A stretch of 64,000 nucleotides of DNA from Rebecca billardiae RCC1528. Lineage: Eukaryota; Protista; Haptophyta. The stretch spans positions 682,001 through 746,000 of the forward strand of contig OZ251230.1 in NCBI GenBank assembly GCA_965240325.2. The letters are read 5' to 3'. Shown one piece after another: positions 7,690-52,377 of this stretch (within the stretch, counting starts at the first letter, position 1; the number at the start of each line of letters is the position of its first letter). Made by a program: the position numbers and the translations under genes. The notes under the pieces are model-generated. The model had not been told where the DNA came from and made no database searches. It saw nothing but the letters and a program-made list of their open reading frames with translations.

Positions 7690-8300
7690 GTCGGCCGAGC
7701 TGCCCTCATCACAGACGGCCCTTACCTGACCCCCTGCGCGTGCGCGACGGCCGACAGGCGGATGCGACTCGGCGTGATCGACGCACGAGCGCGACTGTTG
7801 CACGCCAGGCCACCGGCGGAGCTGACTGACAGCCAGGGAGCCGGACGGCGCGGGACCGCGCGGATTCGACCGTTCGTTCGGGCCTGCCGCTGACCGTCGT
7901 CGCCGCGACGCCAGCAGCGCAGGAGTAGATGATCTGCAGGTCAGTAGGGTTCGACCTGCGCGCCTGCGCGACGGCCGACAGGCGGGCGCGAGGCGTGAGC
8001 GACGCATGAGCGCGACTCTACGTGCACACCAGGCACCACGCGGCCGAGCTGACTGACCGCGAGCCAGGGAGCACGGTGCGAGCAGCCATGCAGCACCGGT
8101 GCTTGCGCGCGCCGCGCGTGCACGGGGTGACACACCTCGGTCAGGCTCGGCACGCGTCGCAGAGGCACGGCCAGCTCTGGGCACGCCAGGCGCCCAGGCC
8201 ACGCGGAGCTGACAGCCACGGGGAGCCGACGGCGCGCGGGGCCGCGGCCAGTTCCGAGTTCGACTTGCGCCTGCTCTGAAGAAGAGTTCTGGGAGACCCT
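7690..8300 (-). pseudogene. Degenerate repeats, possibly a decayed cysteine-containing LRR gene
   Basis: GAGCTGAC..AGCCA.GG(G)AGC blocks at 7819, 8046 and 8206 (spacings near multiples of 78 bp). Minus-strand fragments such as APRGCQLR and SLARG. Frameshifted. Confidence 0.3.
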
Positions 8301-9191
8301 GGCGGAGAGGCATGGCAAGGGGGGCGTGTGGTGAAGTCGGAGACTCAGAGATCGATCAGTCCGGCATCATGCGCCGCTGCCCCCGAGCTTGCGAGAGCCC
8401 GAACACAGGGCGGCGGCTGCGGCGGCGGCGGCGCGGCCGCGCGCCGGCCGGCCGCGCAGGCATCGACAGGGCGCGGCAGGGGCGTGCGGAGTGACTAGTG
8501 AGCGGGCACGAACGCGATGTCGACGGCCGTCGGGACCCGCCGCAGACGCGCGCTCCAGGCGCCACTCGGCACTTGCCACGCGCACCTGCCCATCGAGCGC
8601 CCCCTTGGAGGCTTGGACCAAGAGTCGTCGCGGCTCGCTCGCCACCCCGAAGGAACCTGCGCGTCACGTGCTTGCGACGGCGGCAGGTTTTGAGCTCGCC
8701 AGCTCGGTAAGTCAGTGACTATGGAATGGGCTGGCAACGAATAGCTGCGCGGGTATTTTCAATAAGGCTTGCGGGTTTTAGACTCTAGATACCAACCGCC
8801 GCGAAGCCAAGTTCATATTCATCAAGGCGGAGGCAAACTATCACACATGAACGAGAGTCTACCCACAAAATCGCGCTCGTAACGAACCGTTACACTAATG
8901 TCACGTCCAGCTGACGTCCAGATCGCACTTTACTTAAGGGAATCAGCTGGGCGCGGATATTTTCGGCCTAATAGACCTCTCTATGCGATCTCAAAAACTC
9001 GAAACTCGGTCTCCGCCAGCCCTAAAAATCGCCCCCCGTCCCTTTTTTCTTGATCAAAGATCTTTTTGAAACGTGGTTCGGGCCCGCTGGTGCGGGCTCC
9101 ACGCTGCGCGCTCCGCCCTGCACCGCGGGCCATAATATATATATATAGCTACTTATTTGATCAGTAGCATTATTGCGCATGATGATGTAGC

Positions 9192-11714
9192 TTAATTATA
9201 AAATACACGCTCGTCGATGTCTGCGAGCAGCTCGTCGTCTGCGTCCCCGTCCACGTCGACGGCAAAGATGCCTTCGCGCCACGTCGGGTCGTGTTCCGTC
9301 TGCAGCCGCTCTGCTGCGCGCGCCGCGAGGGCGGACGCGTCGGCTCGGCGCGCGAGGCTCGCAAGGCTGGTGTTGAGCATCCCCAGCATCGGCTCCCACG
9401 GGCGGCGCCACGCGCGTCCCGCCAGGTCGACGTGTGCGGGCACGTCAAAGAGCAGGTCGTACTGCACGGTCGCGTGCGGCTCGAGGTCCCGAGGGACGTG
9501 CACGCAGCACCACGCGTGCGTCCATCGGCTCGCACCCGCGACGAAGGCATCGGCGGCGGCGGCGAGCCGCGCGAGCGCGTCATCCAGCGCAAGGGCGTCC
9601 GCGCCGTCCCCGTCGCGCCGCGCGGCGCCCGCGCTCGGCCCCTCGGCCCACGCCGCGCCGCGCGCGAGCGCGAGCACGTCAGGTGGCTCCCGCAGCTCGA
9701 GCACGAGGGCGTCGTGCGCGCCCGCCGCGGCGAGCAGCGCGCGCGCCGAGCTGAAGTTGGCCGCGTCCAGCCGCGCGCGCCGCGCGTACACCCCCGCGTC
9801 GAAGCGCGGGTGTGCGAAGAAGCTCGACTCGCGCGGCCGCCACTCCTCCGGGATGGCGCCGAGCTCGAGCACGTGGTCAGCCGGACAGCCGCGCACGGGG
9901 AGGCGGACGCGCGAGCGCGGGATGGTGCCGAGGTGCGGCTTGAACCACGTGTCGAGCGCGCAGACGAAGCGCGGGAGGACCAGGCGGCGCCCGAGCGCGC
10001 GCGCGAGCAGCATCGCCGAGCGCAGCCGGCGCAGCTGCCAGTGCGCCAGCCGCATGTGCCCGGGCACCGTGCGGTTCAAAGGCCGCAGCAGGCGGTCGTC
10101 GGCGCGCGGCGGCACGAGCAGCGCTCGCGGCGGCGGCGTGGGCGCGAGCGCGAGGAAGCCCGCCGGCTCGGCCGAGCCCGCGCGGTAGTACGCGTCGTCG
10201 TCGAGCCACAGCTGGCGCTCGCGCAGCCGGTGCACCTTGCCCGGCACTCCGGAGAAGGTGCACGCCGTGTGGTACCCCAGCACCGGCGGCGGCGCCGGAC
10301 GGCCCGCTCGGCGCGCCGCGGCGGCGGCGCGCTCGGGCAAGCGCGCAACGTCGCACGAGCAGCCGTCGCAGAAGGCGGCGATGGGCAGAGCGCCGAAGAC
10401 GAGTGGCTCGAAGCGCGCGCTCGCGCTGCGCCACAGCCTCCGCGGCCACAGGGCCGCGTCCGCGCGCGCGCCCGCAAGGCTGACATTCTCCCTAAGCAGC
10501 TCGTTGAATACGCGCTGGTCCCAGACGGGCCGCCCACCGGCCGCCGCGGCGCGCGCGTTGCCAGCCTCGATGGCCTCGCGCCAGCTGCGCGCGAACGAGC
10601 CGAGGGCGGGCGCGCGCGCGACGAGAATGCCGATATTGATCGCGTTGCTCACCGTCTGCTGCGTCAGCTCGCACGCCTCCAGCCCCCAGTCCGCCACCCC
10701 CGGCCCGACCGCATCCGTTGCCACCAGCAGGTCTGCGCACCCGCACCCCGCGCGCGCCCGGAGCGGCCAGCCCTCGGCCGCGCCCTCGGCATCGGCGGCT
10801 GGCAGCGGCGGCGCGGCGCACGCCGCGGAGCGCCCGGCGGCGGGCGCGAGGTGCCGCGCGAAGAACGGCAGCGGGTCCGAGACGAACGGCGCGTCTGCGT
10901 CCGCGAGGACGACGGTGGGCGCGCCTGCCCCGAGCAGCGCTTGCAGGAAGCTCACCTTGGCCGCACCCATCAGCTTGAAGCGCTCCGTGCCCCAGCCGTA
11001 GTCGGCCGCGGCGCCGCCACCCGCGAGCGGGGTCATCGGCAGCCCGGCGCGCCTGCCCTCGCGCAGCGCGTCCTCGTCGAGCGCGCCCACCACGAAGTGC
11101 GGCAGCCCGACGCGGCAGAGGTGTGCGCCAAACATGCGCGCGAACGGCACGCGCGCGCGGTTCACAAACGTCGCGATGATGAGGCGGCCGAGCGCGTCCA
11201 CTGCGTCCGCCTCCGCGGCGATGCCCGCTGCCACGCCGGCTGGCGCGGTGGCTGCACCGGGCCGGCGCGCGTAGCGCGCGACGAGCTCGGGCAGCGCGGT
11301 GGTGTTTGGCAGCGGCGCGACGCAGGCGAGTGAGCCTGCGCTCCCCACGCGTGGCCACGCCGCCATCGCCGCAGCTAACGCCTCGCGACGCGCGCGTGGC
11401 ACGGGCTTGGGGCTAGGTGGCGATGGGCGGCTGGAGGCCTGTGGGACTGCCGCGTCGACGCCACGCCTGGGGCCCAAGGCCCCGGCGTGATCCGAGGGCG
11501 GCGTCATGTCGTGCGTGCGCGGCCGAGCCGACGCGAGGAACGGCGGCAGAGCTGCGGCGGCTGCCTTCGCTCGCGCCCCGGCGATGCCCATCGGGCGCCT
11601 TGACGAGACGATTCGGCGTGTCTGTAGGATAAGCACGGCGCAGCTCACGAGCACCATGCTCGCCAAGCCACAGGAGAAGAGCAGCCGGCCGCGCCGGCGC
11701 GACGCCGCCGCCAT
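9192..11714 (-). CDS. GT77 nucleotide-diphospho-sugar transferase, XEG113-like arabinosyltransferase (type II membrane protein)
   Basis: N-terminal TM; IIATFVN; VVGALD; DAD (DxD) then DPLPFF; NIGIL; WDQRVFN; GKVHRLRERQLW.D...YY; LARALGRRLVLP; CPADHV; RESSF. Confidence 0.85.
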   Translation of the reverse strand: MAAASRRRGRLLFSCGLASMVLVSCAVLILQTRRIVSSRRPMGIAGARAKAAAAALPPFLASARPRTHDMTPPSDHAGALGPRRGVDAAVPQASSRPSPPSPKPVPRARREALAAAMAAWPRVGSAGSLACVAPLPNTTALPELVARYARRPGAATAPAGVAAGIAAEADAVDALGRLIIATFVNRARVPFARMFGAHLCRVGLPHFVVGALDEDALREGRRAGLPMTPLAGGGAAADYGWGTERFKLMGAAKVSFLQALLGAGAPTVVLADADAPFVSDPLPFFARHLAPAAGRSAACAAPPLPAADAEGAAEGWPLRARAGCGCADLLVATDAVGPGVADWGLEACELTQQTVSNAINIGILVARAPALGSFARSWREAIEAGNARAAAAGGRPVWDQRVFNELLRENVSLAGARADAALWPRRLWRSASARFEPLVFGALPIAAFCDGCSCDVARLPERAAAAARRAGRPAPPPVLGYHTACTFSGVPGKVHRLRERQLWLDDDAYYRAGSAEPAGFLALAPTPPPRALLVPPRADDRLLRPLNRTVPGHMRLAHWQLRRLRSAMLLARALGRRLVLPRFVCALDTWFKPHLGTIPRSRVRLPVRGCPADHVLELGAIPEEWRPRESSFFAHPRFDAGVYARRARLDAANFSSARALLAAAGAHDALVLELREPPDVLALARGAAWAEGPSAGAARRDGDGADALALDDALARLAAAADAFVAGASRWTHAWCCVHVPRDLEPHATVQYDLLFDVPAHVDLAGRAWRRPWEPMLGMLNTSLASLARRADASALAARAAERLQTEHDPTWREGIFAVDVDGDADDELLADIDERVFYN

Positions 11715-12028
11715 CGTTATTGCTCATCATTCGGTCAGGATCATGATAGGCCGCTTACTGTGCACGTTAAAACATAGTAAACTGTACCGTACAGCGGTAC
11801 AGTACGTATGCGAGCAGCAGTGTACAGTAGTACAAGTATAGTGACTGTACGGCGCACTGTACAGCAGCTACCGGCCCTCCAACAGTCGCCAGCCTAGCCC
11901 TTCCAGCTGCGTCGCCGGGTAGCTTACGAAACGGTGATGATGCCAGAGACACTGTGGAGTGCAGCGCGTTCGGATTCATGCAGTCTGACAGCTGCGGACA
12001 GCATTGGCGGCGGCTTGTCGGGTCGTCG

Positions 12029-15000
12029 TCAGACGCGCGCCGTCGTCAGGAACGGGTGCGCGAGCAGCTGGCTCGCGGAGGGCCTCTCCGACGCGTCGCG
12101 CTCGAAGCAGCTGAGCAAGAAGTCGCGCGCGAGCTCGTCCAGGTCGTCCGGCAGCGGCGGCGGCGCGGCCGAGGTGACGATGCGGCACATGACGGTGAAG
12201 GCGTTCATCTCGTGGCCCGGCCGCTCGGGGGTCGCCCACGGGGGCTGGCCGGTGAGCATCTCGAGCACCACGCAGCCCACGCTCCACACGTCGGCCTTGC
12301 GGCCGTACGACGAGCCCGCGATCACCTCCGGCGCCATCCAGAAGGGCGTGCCGTGCAGCGAGTGCAGCGACGAGCGCTCGAGCGAGCGCAGCGACGTGGA
12401 CGAGCCCAGGTCGCCCAGCATGAGCTGTGTGCGCGCGGCCGTGCGGAAGAGGAGGTTGCCTGACTTGATGTCGCGGTGCACGATCTGGTGTGCGTGCAGG
12501 TAGACGACGCCGCTGAGCACCTGCCGCGCGAGCTCGCGCGCGAGCTCGAGGGGCAGCCCGCCCCAGCTGCGCCCGCGCGCGTCGGCGGCGCTCGCGGCGC
12601 GGCCGCCGAGCGCGGGCACGGCGTCTGCCGCGTGCGCGCCGCCCGCCACCTCGTCGAGCAGCTGGCGCAGCGTGCCGCCCTCGGCCAGCTCCATCAGCAC
12701 GTAACGCTCCTCCGCGCGCTCGGCGGGGCCGAGGTAGCGCAGCACGTTCGGGTGCTCGAGCGCGTGCGCCAGCTGCGCCTCCGCCGCGAGCGAGAGCCAC
12801 GCCTGCTCGTTGCTCACGCCGCCCAGCAGCATCTTGGCCGCGGCCGTGCGCCCGTCCGGGTAACACGCCTCGCGCACCACCGAGGAGGCGCCGTGCCCGA
12901 TCACGCGGCCGAGGCGGAGCAGAACGCCGTCGAAGAGGAGGGAGTCGGGCGGGCGCGCGGAGCCTCGCTGCCGCGCTCGGCGCTGCTTCCGCTGCCTCGA
13001 CGGCGGCTGCTGCGCCGGCTGCGTCTGCCTGAGCGCGGAGTGCGCGCCGTGCGCGGCCGCGCTCTGCCCGTCGCCCTCGGCGTCCGAGTCTGTGTCTGCG
13101 TCTGTGTCTGCGTCTGCGCGCTCACGCTCCCAGCGCTCCGCCTCCGCCTCCGCCTCCTCGTCGTCGTCGTCGTCGTCGTGGTCCAGGTCGGTGTCGTCGT
13201 CGATCTCCGCCGTGGCCGGGTCGGACGCGCGCGCGATCTGCCCGCCGAGCGTGCTCACCAGCGACGCGCTCTCGGACCACGCCTCGGTGACGGCGCGCGG
13301 CGGCGTCGGCATCGCGCCGTCGTCGATGCAGTCGCCCAACCCAAAGCAGATCGGGCTGAGGTCCATGCCCTCCAGGTCGCGCTGCCACGCGGCCATGTCG
13401 TCGAGGGCCACGGACTCGAGGTCGTCGGGCAGGCTGACCAGCTCGAACGCCTCGAGCGCGTCGCGCGAGCCCGCCGGGAGCGACTCGTCCACGCTCGCGC
13501 CGCCCGCGGAGCCCGGCGCGCCCGCGCCCGCGCCCGCGCCCGCGCGCGCGCCCGCGCCCGCGCCGCCGGCCGCCGCCTCCGAGTCCAGCACCGAGCTGGC
13601 TGCCGAGCTGGGCGGGCGGCGTGGCGCGGCGCTGCCGACGAGCACGGGGCGGTGGTCGTGCTCGCGCGCGCGGGGCAGCGGGCTCTCGCGCTGGCTCCGC
13701 GCCTGCTGCCCGTCCGCCCTGCCGCCCGGCAGCGACGCGGCGCGCGCACACATCATCACGTGAAACGTCCGGAAGTCTCCGACCGCGTGCACGCGCTGCA
13801 GCACGCGCCACCGCAGCGCGTGGCACTGCTCGTCGGAGGCGACGCAGATCATCGCGCGGGAGAAGACGCGCCACGGCACGCGCACCGCGCGCAGGTGCGC
13901 CTCGAGCAGCTCCGACGCCAGCGCGCCGTACGCCGCGTGCAGCGCGTGCTGCTCGGCGGTGTACTCCACCCCGCTCGTGGCGGCGGCGGCGGCGGCCGGC
14001 CCGCGGAACGGCGCCAAATTGCTTGGGGCGTGCTCAAACGCGCTCAGCGTCTCGTCGTGCTCGAGGAAGTCGAGCGCGGCGCGCAGCGCGTGCACGCGCA
14101 CCTCGAGCACGGCGAGCGCCGCCTCGGCGTGCGCGGCCGCCGTCCGCGCCTCCACCGCCGCCGCGTCCGCCGCGTCCGCGCCCGCCGCGCCGGGCGATGG
14201 CGCGTGCAGTGGCAGCGGCAGCGGCAGCGGCAGCGGCAGCGACAGCGGAGGCGCGGGTGGCGCGTCGGCGTTGGCGCCGTCACCCGCCGCGGCCGCGGCC
14301 GCGGCCGGGGCTGCCTCCCCGGCCTGCTCCGCAAGCAACAGGTCGTCTGCCCCGCCCGGCCGCTCCTCCGCCGCCGGTGCCGCCTCGGCGCTCGGCGGCG
14401 GCGCTGCCTTGTGCGATCGGATCACGCGCTCCGCAACCGAGCGCGCGCGCCTGCGCTCGTTGGCGAGCGTGGCGGGCGAGCCCGGGATGTGGAGCTTGCC
14501 ACCCGCGCGCAGGCGGAAGCTCTTGGACGCGGTGGTCGCGCGCGACGCAGGGCCCGGCGGCACGTCGCCACCGCCGCCACTGCCGCCGCCCTCACCCTCG
14601 CCGCCCTCGCCGCCGTCGCCGCCGTCGCCGCCGCCCTTGCCGTCTGCCGCCGCCGCCGCCGCCGCGACGCCCGCGCGGTTCGGGTAGGCGGGCGCGCGCG
14701 CTGGGGCGAGTGGGCGGCGCGAGCTCAGGTTGGTCACGAGCGGCGGCGGCGAGGACGGCGTGCCCGACACCGACACGCCGCCCGCCCCGCCGGCCGTCGG
14801 CGCAGCTTCAGCAGCGCTGGCCGGGGCCACGGGTGTGGCGGCGGCGCGCGCGCCGTGCGCGCTGCCTCCGAGCGAGACGCGCGCGCGCATGGGCCGCGGC
14901 GGCTGCGCGCCGCGCGGCGGCGAGCGCGTGGGCTGCGCGTGCGCCGCGAGCACCTCGAGCACGCGCCGCCGGTGCAGCCGCTTCGCCAGCGCCCACACGT

Positions 15001-38751: not shown

Positions 38752-39723
<972 letters not shown>

Positions 39724-39910: not shown

Positions 39911-42747
39911 TCACGTGTGCAGCAGGACGCGTCTCGTGCGAGGCACCGGGTCCGTGTCACGCATGAGCAGCTCCAGGTCCGCGTCGCTCGGGCGCGCGGC
40001 CAGAAGCGTGGCGCCGCCGAGCGGCGTGCCAAACACTGGCGTGCGCGCGCCGTCGGCGTCAGCGTGCAGCGCCGGGGCGGCTGCGGACGCGCCCCGCTGC
40101 GGCCGCGGCGTGAGCGCCTCGCCGTCGACGCTCGCGCGCGGGGTGGGCTGCTGCGCGTCCGCGCGCCGGCGCTCGGCGCGCGCGAGGTCGCCCTCCGCCT
40201 CCTCGAGCTCCGCCGCGAGCACGTGCGCCTCCACGATGGCCGCCTGCGCGGACGCGGCCGCGCGCGAGCCCTGCGCGTGCAGCTCAGCGGCCAGCTGTGA
40301 CAGCAGCTGCTGGGAGGAGGCGTGTCGCGCCTGGCCCGGCGGCGTGGGGGCGGGGCGGGCGGGCGGGCGGGCGAGCGGCGGGGAGTCGGGGAGGGGCGTC
40401 ACCGGCAGCCGAGCGCAAGCGGGTGGGCCCGTGCGCAGCCGCGCGCGGCGCGACACATCACATCAGCGGGGCGGCGCGCGCGCTCACCGCGGCCGCCTCC
40501 GCCTCCGCGTGCGAGCGCTGCAGCTGCGCGCGCAGTGCCTCGGCCTCGGCCGCGCTCGCCTGCCCCGCGGCGTGCTGCTGCGCAAGGGCCGCCTGCAGCT
40601 GTGCCTGCGCCTGCCCGAGGCTGAGCACCTCGGCTCTCAGCGCGTCACACGCGCGCGCGCTCTCCGCCGCGCGCTCGGCGCTGCGGCCCGCCTCGGCGGT
40701 GGCGGCCGCACCGTCCGCGCGCGCGCGCGACAAAGCGTCCTCGCAGCCGCGCAGCGCGCGCTCCGCCTCCTCGCGCCGCGCCTCGGCGCGCGCGACGGCG
40801 CGCTCGGCGCGGAAGCCCGGCGCGCCTCCCACCGCGCCACGCCTCGGCACCCCGTCCGCGCCGCTCGGCCGTCGGCCGCCATCCGAGCCGCCGCCCACGC
40901 TGCCGCCAGCCGGCGCGCGCGCGCGCTCAGCGCCCGACTGCTGTGGGCCGCTGTTGCCCTGCGCTGCGGAGGCGGGCGCGCTCGGCCTGGGCGCGCGCTC
41001 TGCGGCGTGCCTCGCGCGCTCCGCGTCCCGCTCGGCGCGCTCCGCCGCCACCTGCTCGGTCAGGCCCTGCGCACGCGGCGCGCAGGCGTCGAGCCGCGCG
41101 CGGGCGATGAGCGAGCGTCAGCGGCGCGCGTCAGCGGCGGCACACGGCCACAGCCGCTGCGCTGTGTGGCGCAGCCGGCGGCGGACAGCGCGGCGCGGCG
41201 CAGCGGCGCCGCGGCATGCGCGCGCGCGCGGCGCGCGCGGCGCGCGCGGTGCGCACTGGGCGCGCGAGCTCGGGCGTGCAGCGCACCTTGAGCGCTTGCA
41301 CGAGCACGCCCTTGTCCGCGCGCGCCCGCGCCGCCTCCTCCTCCGCCCTGCGCAGCCGCGCCTCCGTCCGGCTCAGCTTGGCGACGAGGGCGGAGGCGGC
41401 GTCGTGACCGTCTGCTGCCACCGCGCCGACGGTGGCGTGCGCGTACTGCGCGTCGCGCTGCAGCCGCTCGCGCTCCTTGTGCGCGGCGGCGAGCTGGCGC
41501 TCGAGCTCGGCGGCGCGCGCCTCGGCGGTAGCCTGCGCCTGCGCCGCCGCCTTCTGCCCCGCCACCGCCGCGCTGCGCTCGCGCTCGAGCACCCGCCGGT
41601 CGGCGCGCGTCGAGGCGGCCGCCGCCTCGAGCTGCGAGCGCGCGCCGTGCGCGTCCGCGCGCGCGGCCTGCAGCGCGGCGGCGTGCTCGTCGTCGGCGCG
41701 CGTGGCGGCGTGCCGCTCGTGCGCGAGGCGCCGGCTCGCGCCCGCGTGCGCGCGCTCCAGCCGCGCGATCTCCGCGCCGAGCTCCGCCTGCGCCACGGCC
41801 GCCTCCGCGTGCGCGCGCTGCGCCGCCCCTCGCTGGAAGGCCGCCTCGGCGCGCGCGGCGGAGAGCTCGGCCGCGCGCGCGTCCGCGGCGTCGTTCGCGC
41901 GCGCGAGCGCGTCGGCGAGCTGCTCGCGCGCGGCGTGCTCGTCGCGCAGGCTCTTGCGCGCCGCGAGCAGCTCGTCGCGCACCTCGCGCTCGCGCTGCTG
42001 CGCCGCGTGCTTGGGCGTCGCGGCGCGCGGCACGCCCGCGCCCGCGCCGCGCGCCGCCGGCCGCGCCGCGGGCGCGGGCTCGTAAGCGGCCGGCGTGGGC
42101 ACGGGGTCGGGGGCGGGCGCGAGGCGCGCGGCGCGGCCGGCGGGGCTCGAGCGCCGCCTGAGCTCCGCGCCCGCCTGCTGCGCGCCCGCCAGCGCGCTGC
42201 TCAGCCGCTCCACCTCCGCGCGCAGCTTGCGCCGCTCGCCGCCCGCCAGCAGCAGCGCCCTCCCCGTCGTGGCTAGCGAGCGCTCCATCGCGCGCAGCTC
42301 GGCGCAGAGCGAGGCGGTGTGCGCCTCCGCGCAGAGGAAGTCGAGCTCGGCGCGCCGCGCCATGTTGGACAGTAGGTAGCGCTGCGCGCGCGCCGCCTCG
42401 CGCCGCTCCTCCAGCTCCGCCTCGTCCGCAGAGTCGACGTCGTGCGCGCCGCCGCCGCACGAATCGACCAAAGCCGGGCGGGCAGCGCTTCGAGGCGAGG
42501 CGGCGGCGCGCGGCGAGGAGCCGACGTACCCGCTCGGTGCTGGCGCGTTGTCCACGCCCATCAGCACGGCTGCGTCGTGGCGCATGGGCGAGAGGCTGTT
42601 TGCGCGGCTCGAGATCGCGCCCACGGGCGCGCACGCCGCGAGCGCGGCCGTGTCGCGCGACGGGGACAGCGACCGCACGTACGGGGCGGCGCCCATCGGG
42701 CTCATCCGCTTCGATGCGGCGCCGGTGCCGGTGACGGCGAGGAGCAT
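39911..42747 (-). CDS. Hypothetical long coiled-coil protein, multi-exon (intron 41067-41286 and one near 40330-40487)
   Basis: Ala/Glu/Arg heptad-rich frames linked by GT..AG introns. Confidence 0.65.
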
Positions 42748-42935
42748 CGCGCCTGCTCTGTACGCGCGAGACGAGCGCTCACAAGCCGCTCAGCTCAGTC
42801 GCCTTGGGCGGCGTCCGCCATTGCCGCTGTTTAGCCGGTTTGAACTCCCAAAGTCCGGAAGCCACGAACGAGCGAGTCCGGTAGCGGCGGATTTGAATGG
42901 GCCTTGGTTTTTGGGTTGACTCTCCGCTCTCCGCC

Positions 42936-44886
42936 ATGGCGCTGCCGGCGGTGGAGTCGCGGCGGTCCCACGTCGTGCGCCGCAAGGTGCGCCGGAGGCA
43001 TGCGCGGCCACGCGTGCCGTAGCGCATGCCGAGACGCGTGCTCAATCGCGCCCCGCCGCCGTGCCGCCTGCCGCGCGCGCTCCGCAGGGCACCGGCCGCG
43101 AGACGACGCGGCGGCCGATCGTGTTTGCGTCGCGCTTCAGCAAGCGCGTGCTGCCGGCTGGCCCGCAGGATGAGTACGGCATGGACGACCTCGACGCGTT
43201 CTGGAAGGACGACTGTCCCGATGCGCCGGATGCCAAGCCCGCCGCCAGCCCGCCGCTGCCCGCGGGCGCCGCTGCCAGCCTCGCGACGGCGGCGAGCACG
43301 CCGGCGCTCGCCGCCGGCGTCGAGCCGAGCCCGATGCTGAAGAAGCCGCCTGGCGGCCTCCTCCTCGCCCGCACGCCCGTGGCCAAGCCGCCTGAGGACG
43401 CTGCGCCCGCGCTGCCCGCGCCGACCAGCGGCGGCAGCTCCGGCCGCCGCCTGTCCGCGCGGCAGGCCGCTCGCAGGTCGCCGCGCGAGGAGAGCGCAGA
43501 GGACCCCGACGTGCCGCACCGGCCTCCGGGCGGCTACCTGCTGGCGCGCACGCCGGTGCACAAGCCAGACGACGCGGCTGCTGCTACCGAGCGCGCCGCG
43601 CTCGACGCGGGCGCCAGCGCCGTCGCGCAGATGCTCGACTCCGCCGCGGACGAGGCCGACGGCGGCGCGCCCGAAGCCGAGCCTTCCGTGCACGGCGGCG
43701 CGAGCGAGGCTGGCGATGAGCCCGAGGGCGCAGACGCTGGCGCGCACGTGGACGGGCTTGAGGAGGACGCGATGGACGCAGCAGCCGACGTTGACGCCGG
43801 GCGCGAGGACGAGCACGGCGGCTTCGACGACGCCGCCTCGAGCGACCGCGACGACGACAGCCACGAGGAGGGCGACGCGGCGGACGAGGACGAGGACGAC
43901 GACGACGACGACGATGATGGCGAGTTTGGCGCTGGCACGCTGGAGGACGCCGAGGCTGCGCTCGACGAGAGCGAGCCCACGCTCATCGGCGAGAGCGCCA
44001 AGCCGCCGCACCGCATGTCCGTCGACGCGGCCGAGGCGGCCAAGGCCAAGCGCAAGGCGGACCGCAAGAGGCGGCGCGGCCCGGACGCGTCGTGCATCCA
44101 CCCGTCGCTGGAGGAGCTCGAGCGACGCGCGCGCGAGCGTGCGGACGAGGACCACGGGCTGCGGCGCACGCGGCGGAAGCGGATGTCGCCGCTCAAGTTC
44201 TGGAAGAACGAGCGGCCGGTCTACGGCCGGCGGCAGTCGGTGCGCGCGCCGCGCCGCCCCCGTCGCGCGCGCGCCGCCGCGTGCGCCCATGTCCCCGCGC
44301 TCAGCGCGTCGGCTCCGTCCCGCGGTGCGCGCGCGCCTCTCTCTGCGCCGCGCGGCTCCGTGCGCAGGCCAAGTTTGCCGCCATCGTCGACGTGCTCAAG
44401 AGCGACGTGGCCGAGCCGCCGCCGCCCTCGCTGGCGGTCGAGCGCGCGCGCACCGCGCCGAGCGCGCACCCCAAGGGCAGCGCGAAGCCCGCCAAGCCCG
44501 CGCCTTCCGCGGCCTCCAAGCAGGCGGGCAAGCGCGGTGCGGCCGGCGGCGGCGCGGCTGCCACGGCGAGCGGCAGCGCTGCCGGGCCGTCCGCGCCGAG
44601 CGCCGCCGCGGAGCCGAAGAAGATGAGCGGCTTCATGGTCTTCGCGAACGAGCAGCGCCCGATCATCAAGGCTGCAGAGCCGTCCATCCCCTTCGGCGAG
44701 CTGGGGAAGCGCATCGGCGAGCGCTGGCGCGCGCTGGCGGACGCGGAGCGCGCAGAGTACACGCAGCGCGGCGCGGGCAGCGCGCCCGCGCCGCCCAAGG
44801 CGGGCACGGCGCACTCCGCGACGCCAGACGGGTCGGAGGGCGAGGAGGAGGAGCTGCCGCTCGCCAAGCGCGTGGCGCTGCGTTGA
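42936..44886 (+). CDS. CENPC: CENP-C/Mif2-like kinetochore protein with a C-terminal HMG box; introns 42987-43087 and 44240-44367
   Basis: Mif2 N-terminal-like GTGRET and DEYGMDDLDAFW; acidic tract; CENP-C motif GLRRTRRKRMSPLKFWKNERPVY; HMG box PKKMSGFMVFANEQR..IK....PFGELGKRIGERWRAL..AERAEY. Confidence 0.82.

Positions 44887-52334: not shown

Positions 52335-52337
<3 letters not shown>

Positions 52338-52377
<40 letters not shown>
52338..52377. repeat. (TA)n microsatellite
   Basis: Direct reading. Confidence 0.95.

Follow-up and report, generated by a model that had tools for sequence, protein, structure and literature searches.

A probable CENP-C orthologue with a spliced-on HMGB-like module and without a cupin in the pavlovophyte-type haptophyte Rebecca billardiae

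Introduction

CENP-C is the hub through which the remainder of the kinetochore is connected to centromeric chromatin. It is debated whether its stable and specific binding to chromatin occurs via the CENP-C motif alone, via the motif together with DNA contacts, or via dimerisation. The motif of Mif2 acts within a DNA- and histone-binding domain that includes an AT hook and RK clusters (PMC5710141). The plant CENPC motif alone fails to target centromeres, and adjacent sequence-independent DNA-binding regions are required; these regions can be replaced by the DNA-binding domain of bacterial H-NS (PMC11879092). Plant CENP-Cs reach their C-terminus about 80 aa after the motif region begins, and show no similarity to the Mif2 block (Talbert 2004, PMC549713).

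Here we describe a gene of Rebecca billardiae, a haptophyte of pavlovophyte type, that probably encodes its orthologue of CENP-C (Mif2). The C-terminus of the protein is unusual, with a spliced-on HMGB-like module that we infer to be a DNA anchor, and without a cupin. Coordinates are those of the window, the 64,000-nt stretch of genomic DNA that was analysed.

Gene structure

The gene occupies positions 42936-44886 of the + strand and has three exons. Each element of the exon and intron layout proposed in the initial annotation was recovered in place, and both introns are GT..AG and phase 0. Searches and structure models took the exons one at a time. In the list of features below, L002 is an orthologous metagenome contig and CCMP2436 is the sister species Pavlovales sp. 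CCMP2436; slashes mark exon boundaries.

42936-42986, + strand: exon 1 (17 aa, MALPAVES..VVRRK)
42987-43087, + strand: intron 1 (101 nt, GT..AG, phase 0; AAG/GTGCGC..CCGCAG/GGC)
43088-44239, + strand: exon 2 (384 aa), the CENP-C body; orthologues P0001 and P0002
43088-43213, + strand: N-terminal conserved block, Mif2_N-like (GTGRETT.RP.VF..SKRV ... DEYGMDDLDAFWKDD), by BLASTP to P0026
43346-43381, + strand: repeat motif copy 1, PPGGLLLARTPV, with a TP site; kept in L002
43523-43558, + strand: repeat motif copy 2, PPGGYLLARTPV, with a TP site; kept in L002 and in CCMP2436 genomic DNA (L024:6442)
43640-43990, + strand: acidic low-complexity region (41% D+E), containing a conserved GEFGAG(L/T)LE block
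44039-44080, + strand: basic R/K cluster, AKAKRKADRKRRRG, just 5' of the CENP-C motif; an invariant DASCIHPSL block follows it
44156-44239, + strand: CENP-C motif, GLRRTRRKRMSPLKFWKNERPVYGRRQS (PDB peptide matches, pattern, hhalign)
44240-44367, + strand: intron 2 (128 nt, GT..AG, phase 0; TCG/GTGCGCGC..GCGCAG/GCC)
44368-44886, + strand: exon 3 (172 aa and stop)
44368-44406, + strand: start of exon 3, AKFAAIVDVLKSD, a conserved hydrophobic extension of the CENP-C motif
44407-44613, + strand: A/P/K-rich disordered linker, net basic (69 aa; 8 K+R vs 3 D+E; pLDDT <50)
44614-44775, + strand: HMG box of the HMGB/NHP6A type (Pfam PF00505), whose short helix 3 has a conserved Y..RGA at its end
44830-44886, + strand: acidic patch, conserved C-terminal motif (EEE-LPLAKRVALR) and stop codon; kept in L002 and CCMP2436

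An alternative start is provided by an in-frame ATG at 42897, which would add 13 aa to the N-terminus. The pattern of exon 1 (MA.., a V.RR basic run, then GTGR.TT) recurs in the relatives P0026 and P0037 as a single uninterrupted ORF, and the counterpart of the exon 1 end in L002 reads ..HVVLRE/GTGCGA. Because intron 2 is 128 nt long, its retention would shift the frame and the HMG box would be lost. The host genome comprises 72 Mb with a GC content of about 70%.

CENP-C motif and N-terminal region

The CENP-C motif was recognised as a basic run followed by [FYW]-W-x-x-E-[RK]-x-x-Y. Its best PDB sequence matches are CENP-C motif peptides (7bxt_K, E 0.057; 6qld_C, which is Mif2, 0.41; and 4x23_V, 0.99), and such weak E-values are expected because the motif has about 25 residues. 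Alignment by hhalign to a yeast Mif2-type protein gave 93% probability. The strict degenerate pattern for the motif core has two sites in the 72-Mb genome, the locus at 44156-44239 and one without a basic run, and a reversed-pattern control over the same 72 Mb gave 0 matches. The second site (LQYWRMENLSY, on C16) lies inside an unrelated ORF and was rejected as a chance match. The locus at 44156-44239 is the sole CENP-C motif recognised in the host genome.

A profile built from three sequences (exon 2, P0001 and P0002) retrieved 44 proteins, all but two of which (42) carry the CENP-C motif by the strict pattern. Among these relatives are six that bear cupins, and some whose names are 'centromere protein C' or 'Mif2/CENP-C like'. 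Also identified in the host genome were a candidate cenH3 gene (G000:C20:1256771-1257237) and a Mis12 homologue (58.7 bits; G000:C13:655246-655674).

The N-terminal block (exon 2 aa 1-43) aligns with aa 25-78 of P0026 (BLASTP, E 3e-6), a protein that exceeds the Pfam cut-off for Mif2_N (PF15624; 24.8 bits vs 23.5). Direct Pfam scans of exon 2 and its sub-pieces returned no match, Mif2_N included, and the Mif2_N-type assignment is thus transitive, via P0026. A search of the whole genome for Mif2_N found none, which is a weak negative, as the control genomes were those of prokaryotes. Judging from its similarity to Mif2_N, the block is presumed to be the region that binds the Mis12 complex. The CENP-C-type identity initially given to this gene is supported by the motif, the Mif2-like N-terminus and the presence of a single locus in the genome.

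Also confirmed was the duplicated PPGG(L/Y)LLARTPV motif, with both copies (43346-43381 and 43523-43558) kept in L002 and one present in CCMP2436 genomic DNA. The TP sites that had been described in it as CDK-type are there, but they are minimal S/T-P sites with K at +4.

Junction of exons 2 and 3

The initial annotation placed the HMG exon in the same transcript as the CENP-C motif exon. This is supported by spliced cDNA-like contigs of CCMP2436, by the intron and exon arrangement of L002 and by the homology of the start of exon 3. The cDNA-like contigs L006 and L007 match genomic exons of CCMP2436 at 100%, and in them a single reading frame leads from the motif exon into the HMG exons and on to the stop; an intron at the point of intron 2 is implied in CCMP2436 as well. 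This transcript evidence comes from the relative, the host gene being known from genomic DNA. In L002 the position of intron 2, its donor and acceptor, and the HMG exon are the same as here. Stretches equivalent to the start of exon 3 directly follow YGRR.S in other CENP-Cs (SAKFEAIIDVV in P0037 and ..PVIVDVVR in P0007), and the CENP-C gene calls of other lineages cross this post-motif stretch, which exon 3 continues, without a break.

A second CCMP2436 locus (L001) was set aside as evidence for the HMG exons, because the assembly has a gap downstream of it and the expected donor lacks a GT; the sister locus L024 settled the join that L001 left gapped, although its own gap at L024:10464-11613 leaves that gene incomplete. 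At least three pavlovophyte genomes or transcriptomes share this architecture.

The HMG box and the C-terminus

The HMG box (PF00505) was identified by Pfam with E 7.2e-14 and 52.4 bits (cut-off 25.4), over profile positions 2-52 of 69, and the boxes of the orthologues score 49.1 and 37.9 bits. PDB sequence matches are to NHP6A (E 2.6e-11) and to HMGB1 box B. In the HMMER alignment, Met90 and Phe109 of the query stand opposite Met29 and Phe48 of NHP6A, which we take to be its two DNA-wedging residues. The dN/dS of the box is 0.35-0.38, below that of its flanks.

An AF2 model of the box that relied on full-length paralogues in the alignment (pLDDT 84) has three helices, the third of 13 residues, and its top Foldseek matches are all HMG boxes (TM 0.66-0.73 over 50-61 columns), including NHP6A (TM 0.66, rmsd 2.1 A). 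The first AF2 model, of the whole of exon 3 with a 4-sequence alignment, reached pLDDT 59 with helices 2 and 3 merged and no L shape, and gave Foldseek E-values of 0.06 or worse.

The single HMG box reported initially is significant in Pfam, but its truncation in helix 3 had gone unremarked. Given that about 50 of the 69 profile positions are covered and that helix 3 has about 13 residues, the L-shaped fold may lack its long arm. Helix 3 is short, at about half the usual length, in all three pavlovophyte sequences. A hidden intron that would restore a full helix 3 was rejected for the pavlovophytes, where the spliced cDNA is short too and the terminal motif is in frame in all three. The C-terminal motif reads ..VLPLSKRMAMRT in L002 and ..VLPAASKRMSMRS in the CCMP2436 cDNA, each followed by the stop codon, and a helix is weakly predicted at exon-3 residues 165-171.

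The missing cupin

The protein ends about 37 aa past the HMG box, without a cupin. A six-frame search of the 72-Mb genome with the cupin profile PF11699 (E<=10) gave 0 matches, a result that a very divergent or intron-fragmented cupin could escape. With a cupin-bearing CENP-C as the genome query, the sole match was the locus at 44156-44239, via the motif and with no cupin. The search for a cupin-bearing CENP-C elsewhere in the genome, proposed in the initial annotation, therefore found none by profile, pattern or protein query.

A terminal cupin, taken in the initial annotation to be normal for CENP-C, is the rule in animals and fungi only; plants lack it (PMC549713), as do several algal relatives, which stop 55-80 aa past the motif with a basic tail. 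That the HMG box stands in place of a cupin is consequently not established; an origin of the HMG module as an elaboration of a short basic tail is equally possible. Because cupin-less CENP-Cs were already known in plants, the new feature is the HMG box rather than the absence of the cupin.

Distribution

The description of this architecture as lineage-specific was too narrow, since a cryptophyte-like protein (P0025), encoded by a single ORF, likewise has both a CENP-C motif and an HMG box. Homologue searches by word index, with P0004 and P0025 as queries, added one sequence, Rhodomonas P0051. Two metagenome scans, with the exon-3 alignment and with the CENP-C alignment, found nothing, and none of the papers searched describes a CENP-C combined with an HMG box. 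The haptophytes in which the fusion was recognised are pavlovophytes; no prymnesiophyte CENP-C (Emiliania and others) was identifiable among the profile matches.

Alternative explanations

Public gene callers split or truncated the orthologues exactly at the end of the motif exon (P0001, P0002 and P0003, with a separate 246-aa call in L002), as would be the case if the HMG exon were a separate small downstream HMGB gene and CENP-C ended in or near 'intron' 2. Although the transcripts come from CCMP2436 and not from the host, such an artefact of the gene model is barely credible: the spliced contigs join both parts, the intron position and splice sites are conserved, the conserved first part of exon 3, which opens with the CENP-C motif extension, contains no separate start codon, and read-through of intron 2 yields an unconserved Arg/Pro-rich tail. 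It is a little easier to imagine, but still unlikely, that the box is a decaying remnant without a DNA-binding role and that the terminal motif or the linker is what matters. The truncation of helix 3 in all three pavlovophytes, a dN/dS that indicates moderate constraint only, and the failure of the first AF2 model to form the canonical fold are consistent with decay. Against this, substitutions at the core residues (W, Y, the wedge positions F/M, and P) are absent or conservative, all three pavlovophytes score well over the Pfam cut-off, the truncation point (Y..RGA) is itself conserved and the box evolves more slowly than its flanks. Furthermore, this span is also aligned, with a score below cut-off, by the Pfam WDHD1 HMG-box model, which is just 51 positions long.

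The protein could also be a KNL2/M18BP1-like cenH3-loading factor with a CENPC-k motif, the true CENP-C having been lost or become unrecognisable. CENPC-k motifs closely resemble CENP-C motifs and also lie near DNA-binding regions (PMC11879092), and no cupin was found in the gene or the genome. The SANTA domain (PF09133) expected of such a factor is absent from the protein by Pfam, and was not detected in the genome search either, a weak negative in that the control genomes were prokaryotic and silent. The N-terminus is of the Mif2_N type via P0026, every relative that has a name or a detected additional domain is a CENP-C/Mif2, and the post-motif stretch agrees with that of CENP-Cs. A KNL2-like identity is thus very unlikely, and we retain the reading of the gene as CENP-C with an HMGB-like module.

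Proposed mechanism and implications

By analogy with Mif2 and plant CENP-C, we infer that the HMG module functions as a folded, sequence-independent DNA anchor beside the CENP-A-binding motif. The N-terminus would recruit the Mis12 complex and the CENP-C motif would engage centromeric nucleosomes at their acidic patch and at the cenH3 tail, while the HMG box and basic clusters would bind nucleosomal or linker DNA in the minor groove, independently of sequence. The box may in this way provide the additional hold on DNA on which the CENP-C motif is known to depend, as a folded-domain counterpart of Mif2's AT hook together with its RK clusters and of the basic regions flanking the motif in plants. 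Like the acidic tails of HMGB proteins, the acidic stretches may have a damping effect on the HMG box, and dimerisation, if any, would be by something other than a cupin. Reading of DNA structure (cruciform, satellite) by the protein, put forward in the initial annotation, is conjectural.

A wider proposal, possible but on the whole doubtful, is that the fusion of CENP-C with an HMGB box is an old or recurrent design of the inner kinetochore (in pavlovophytes and the P0025 lineage), in which the box, bending DNA, would hold the loosely wound entry/exit or linker DNA of cenH3 nucleosomes and replace dimerisation by the cupin, and LP..KR..R would be a new site for a partner or for self-association. 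If true, these algae would be a natural test of whether a CENP-C motif plus any non-specific DNA binder is sufficient to mark the centromere. A natural cupin-less CENP-C with a predicted folded DNA-binding domain would parallel both the engineered fusion of the motif with H-NS and the yeast AT hook. ChIP of the CENP-C-HMG protein would provide a handle for locating the centromeres of these GC-rich algae. The analysis also corrects truncated gene models in the public annotation of Pavlovales sp. CCMP2436.

Comparison with known systems

Shared with the CENP-C/Mif2 of animals and fungi are the N-terminal block, Mif2-like by way of P0026, an acidic, PEST-like middle, a basic cluster, the canonical motif with its hydrophobic extension, and the single copy. 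Those proteins combine a Mis12-binding N-terminus and the motif with a C-terminal cupin dimer, whereas here the motif is followed by an HMG box with an acidic patch and by a terminal motif that is both new and conserved.

Like the HMGB/NHP6A proteins (plant HMGB layout: a basic N-terminal region, one box and an acidic tail), the module has a single box of the non-sequence-specific type with basic and acidic flanks, and Met and Phe at the positions aligned with the NHP6A wedge residues; NHP6A and HMGB1 box B are its closest matches. It differs in its helix 3, which has about half the normal length, and in its location at the C-terminal end of a kinetochore protein. KNL2/M18BP1 (SANTA plus CENPC-k) similarly has a CENP-C-like motif flanked by DNA-binding regions, which are predicted here, but SANTA is absent from our protein, and its N-terminus is, via P0026, of the Mif2 type.

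S. cerevisiae Mif2 (PMC5710141) likewise has a minor-groove DNA-binding element (a predicted one here) just C-terminal to the motif and a basic cluster before it, and the RK clusters of its DNA- and histone-binding domain resemble the basic R/K cluster in position. The Mif2 AT hook is a 9-residue peptide that prefers AT-rich DNA, whereas a box of the HMGB type introduces bends and favours distorted DNA; Mif2 also keeps the cupin, while the protein described here has none and is encoded in a genome of about 70% GC. Plant (and apparently green-algal-type) CENP-C resembles it in being cupin-less, with the motif near the C-terminus (PMC549713, PMC11879092). The DNA-binding element in plants is a short basic patch, whereas here it is predicted to be a folded HMG-box domain that follows a 69-aa linker.

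Gene structure, CENP-C motif and N-terminus

At a single locus of the 72-Mb G000 genome of the same alga we identified a CENP-C that carries an HMG box, an architecture that is conserved in relatives and spliced as one transcript in a sister species. The gene has three exons, which were searched and modelled one by one:

42936-42986, forward strand, exon 1 (17 aa)
43088-44239, forward strand, exon 2 (384 aa)
44368-44886, forward strand, exon 3 (172 aa and stop)

Both introns are GT..AG and phase 0, in a window of ~70-80% GC. Retention of intron 2 (128 nt) leads to a frameshift and an unconserved Arg/Pro-rich tail lacking the HMG box. The protein would be 13 residues longer if translation began at an upstream in-frame ATG (42897), but homology to the related proteins P0026 and P0037 favours 42936 as the probable start. 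Only 188 bp separate this start codon from that of a divergent 538-aa ORF (41131-42747, reverse strand), which is Ala/Arg/Glu-rich, coiled-coil in appearance and without a Pfam match.

The Pfam scan matched nothing in exon 2. The final 28 residues of this exon form a canonical CENP-C motif. Among PDB sequences, its best matches are CENP-C motif peptides from structures with CENP-A nucleosomes: chicken (7bxt_K, E 0.057), yeast Mif2 (6qld_C, 0.41) and rat (4x23_V, 0.99). These E-values are weak, as expected of a query of ~25 residues; hhalign to a yeast Mif2-type protein gave 93% probability. The Mif2-type N-terminal motifs of the initial annotation are recovered transitively rather than directly: exon 2 residues 1-43 align with P0026 residues 25-78 (E 3e-6), and P0026 lies above the Pfam Mif2_N cut-off (24.8 vs 23.5 bits). 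The PPGG(L/Y)LLARTPV pair is kept in L002 (an orthologous metagenome contig), and one of the copies occurs in genomic DNA of Pavlovales sp. CCMP2436. Its TP sites, previously read as CDK-type, are present, but match the minimal CDK type only.

Orthologues and the exon 2-exon 3 junction

Two orthologues came out of a word-index search: P0001, on the JGI metagenome contig L002, and P0002, from CCMP2436. By these matches the alga is a haptophyte of pavlovophyte type. Both gene calls run into the intron directly past ..YGRRQS, and the architecture is therefore absent from public annotation. The L002 intron has the same donor (TCG followed by GTGCGCGCGCC) and acceptor (GCGCAG followed by GCCAAGTT), and the exon after it codes for AKFEAIIDV.. 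and an HMG box (49.1 bits), followed by ..VLPLSKRMAMRT*. From a set of 1.84 billion representatives, a profile of the three sequences retrieved 44 proteins. All 42 pattern-checked matches have the CENP-C motif (the other two missed the strict pattern), and those with names are 'centromere protein C' or 'Mif2/CENP-C like-domain-containing'. Six of the retrieved proteins have a cupin, and several algal relatives end 55-80 aa past the motif in a basic tail.

P0004 and P0045 are unbroken ORFs on 1.36-kb contigs (JGI sample 3300017275). The DNA of these contigs aligns to the CCMP2436 genomic locus L024 (MU631393.1) as a series of separate blocks:

8794-8883, motif exon (contig-genome block match)
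9489-9568, 9727-9801, 9913-9991 and 10253-10324, further blocks past the motif exon
11824-12198, 3' end, after an assembly gap

One of the two cDNA-like contigs, L007, is 100% identical to L024 from block 8150-8253 on, and differs from the other, L006, by a 15-nt alternative acceptor (3' splice site). Given the separate blocks, the contigs are spliced mRNAs. In a single frame they read ..FWRNERVVYGRRQS-AKFEAIVDV.., HMG box (37.9 bits), ..EEEEVLPAASKRMSMRS*. Thus the HMG exon belongs to the CENP-C transcript, as initially proposed, and not to a separate one, but the splice is that of the sister species.

In unbroken gene calls of CENP-Cs from other lineages the motif is followed by YGRR.S, ~3 residues and a hydrophobic V-I-V-D-V-[LV]-[KR] (e.g., P0005, P0007, P0015, P0016, and P0037 with 'SAKFEAIIDVV'). 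Exon 3 starts with this same stretch (AKFAAIVDVLKSD), and is therefore a homologous continuation of exon 2 rather than part of a neighbouring gene.

In CCMP2436 (GCA_026770615.1), the public models T492DRAFT_527843 and T492DRAFT_905403 stop short or are wrongly spliced past the motif (L024:6001-12198 and L001:8001-12793). The HMG module of L024 comprises at least four more small exons (L006, L007). L001 has no GT where the donor is expected, and could represent either a degenerate second copy or an error of assembly.

The HMG box

Exon 3 encodes one HMG box (PF00505, E 7.2e-14, 52.4 bits vs cut-off 25.4), closest to NHP6A (E 2.6e-11) and HMGB1 box B, with a net-basic A/P/K-rich linker before it and an acidic patch and short terminal motif after it. 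In all three pavlovophyte boxes the profile match stops at ~position 52 of 69 with a conserved Y..RGA end; thus, helix 3 is short. A hidden intron restoring it is unlikely, as the short form occurs in spliced cDNA and the terminal motif is in frame. AF2 modelled the whole exon poorly (pLDDT 59, helices 2 and 3 merged). The box with an 8-sequence alignment reached pLDDT 84 (helices 11-26, 32-45, 48-60), in a model that leans on the full-length same-genome paralogues included. Its top Foldseek matches are all HMG boxes (NHP6A TM 0.66, rmsd 2.1 A). The HMMER alignment places Met90 and Phe109 opposite Met29 and Phe48, the DNA-wedging residues of NHP6A.

We identified ~10 other HMG-box loci in G000, the nearest 50% identical. 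At one (L015:1459-1659; G000:C21:1090446-1090592, reverse strand) the box likewise seems to break off within helix 3 (..EERTAYIERSQREGTGSG..), which may mean that an exon ends there or that this is another box with a short helix 3.

The HMG join could be a gene-model artefact, but the probability is low given the spliced CCMP2436 contigs and the post-motif stretch that opens exon 3. Decay of the box is also improbable: dN/dS is 0.35-0.38 in the box vs mostly 0.5-0.8 (range 0.38-0.80) in the flanks. We also assign a low probability to a KNL2-like factor in place of a CENP-C.

A cryptophyte-like protein, P0025 (Logan assembly of ERR9769281, 48% GC; nearest named relative a Rhodomonas salina fragment), is a single unbroken 539-aa ORF with a weak Mif2_N-like N-terminus, a CENP-C motif and, at the C-terminus, an HMG box (30.1 bits, over cut-off; 28% identical to the pavlovophyte box). 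The ORF ends ..ERATYV*, with a possible GTACGT donor there. Two near-duplicate segments starting ..ADKQ.. lie 3' of it (L010:2891-3170), the second resembling the half of helix 3 that the HMG box lacks (FADKQCERYLTHFKIYN).

Uniqueness and candidate kinetochore partners

Within G000, a query with the motif piece matched its own locus only. The strict pattern L-x-[FY]-W-x-x-E-x-x-x-[FY] occurs at the CENP-C site and one other, which has no basic run and is a chance match; the reversed control pattern gave zero sites. In the genome check proposed in the initial annotation, no cupin-bearing CENP-C was found: PF11699 (CENP-C cupin) found nothing at E<=10, and the cupin-bearing CENP-C P0027 hit only this locus, via the motif (E 7e-5), with no match to its cupin.

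A Mis12 homologue (PF05859, 58.7 bits; G000:C13:655246-655674, L022) is encoded on the same contig as the CENP-C gene, ~70 kb upstream of it. Compared with the canonical H3 copies, a two-exon H3 variant (G000:C20:1256771-1257237, reverse strand; L029/L037) has ~4-5 additional residues in loop 1; its N-tail is divergent and its C-terminal tail extended (..IRGTHGGRIESLR). From these sequence features it is a plausible candidate cenH3.

The N-terminus would recruit Mis12 and the motif would bind cenH3 nucleosomes, with the HMG box as a possible non-specific DNA anchor, perhaps modulated by the acidic stretches. Recognition of cruciform DNA or the 140-bp satellite by the box is not supported. The satellite (window:3181-4963; tandem, 11.5 copies, 94% matches; 422-bp higher-order period, 4.1 copies) sits in gene-dense GC-rich DNA with no link to the CENP-C gene. 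The window also has microsatellites of pure (TA)n, 20-73 units long (window:16287-16363, 39575-39721, 52337-52377), which fall at local GC dips in ~70% GC surroundings.

Comparison with known CENP-Cs

The canonical layout, derived from animals and fungi, starts with a Mis12-binding N-terminus and a CCAN-binding middle; the motif that binds CENP-A and, at the C-terminus, a cupin dimer follow (PMC9252888). In plants, CENP-C terminates ~80 residues after the motif region begins and has no other similarity to the Mif2 C-terminus (PMC549713). As these and several algal CENP-Cs are short after the motif, cupin absence is not new; the initial annotation was right that this gene has none, but not that CENP-C generally ends in one. 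No record of a CENP-C bearing an HMG box emerged from a full-text literature search, which returned three unrelated papers. In plants the CENPC motif cannot target centromeres by itself: it requires neighbouring regions that bind DNA independently of sequence, and the H-NS DNA-binding domain can replace them (PMC11879092). In yeast, the Mif2 motif is part of a domain that binds DNA and histones and includes RK clusters and an AT hook (PMC5710141). The CENP-C/HMG fusion fits both of these results.
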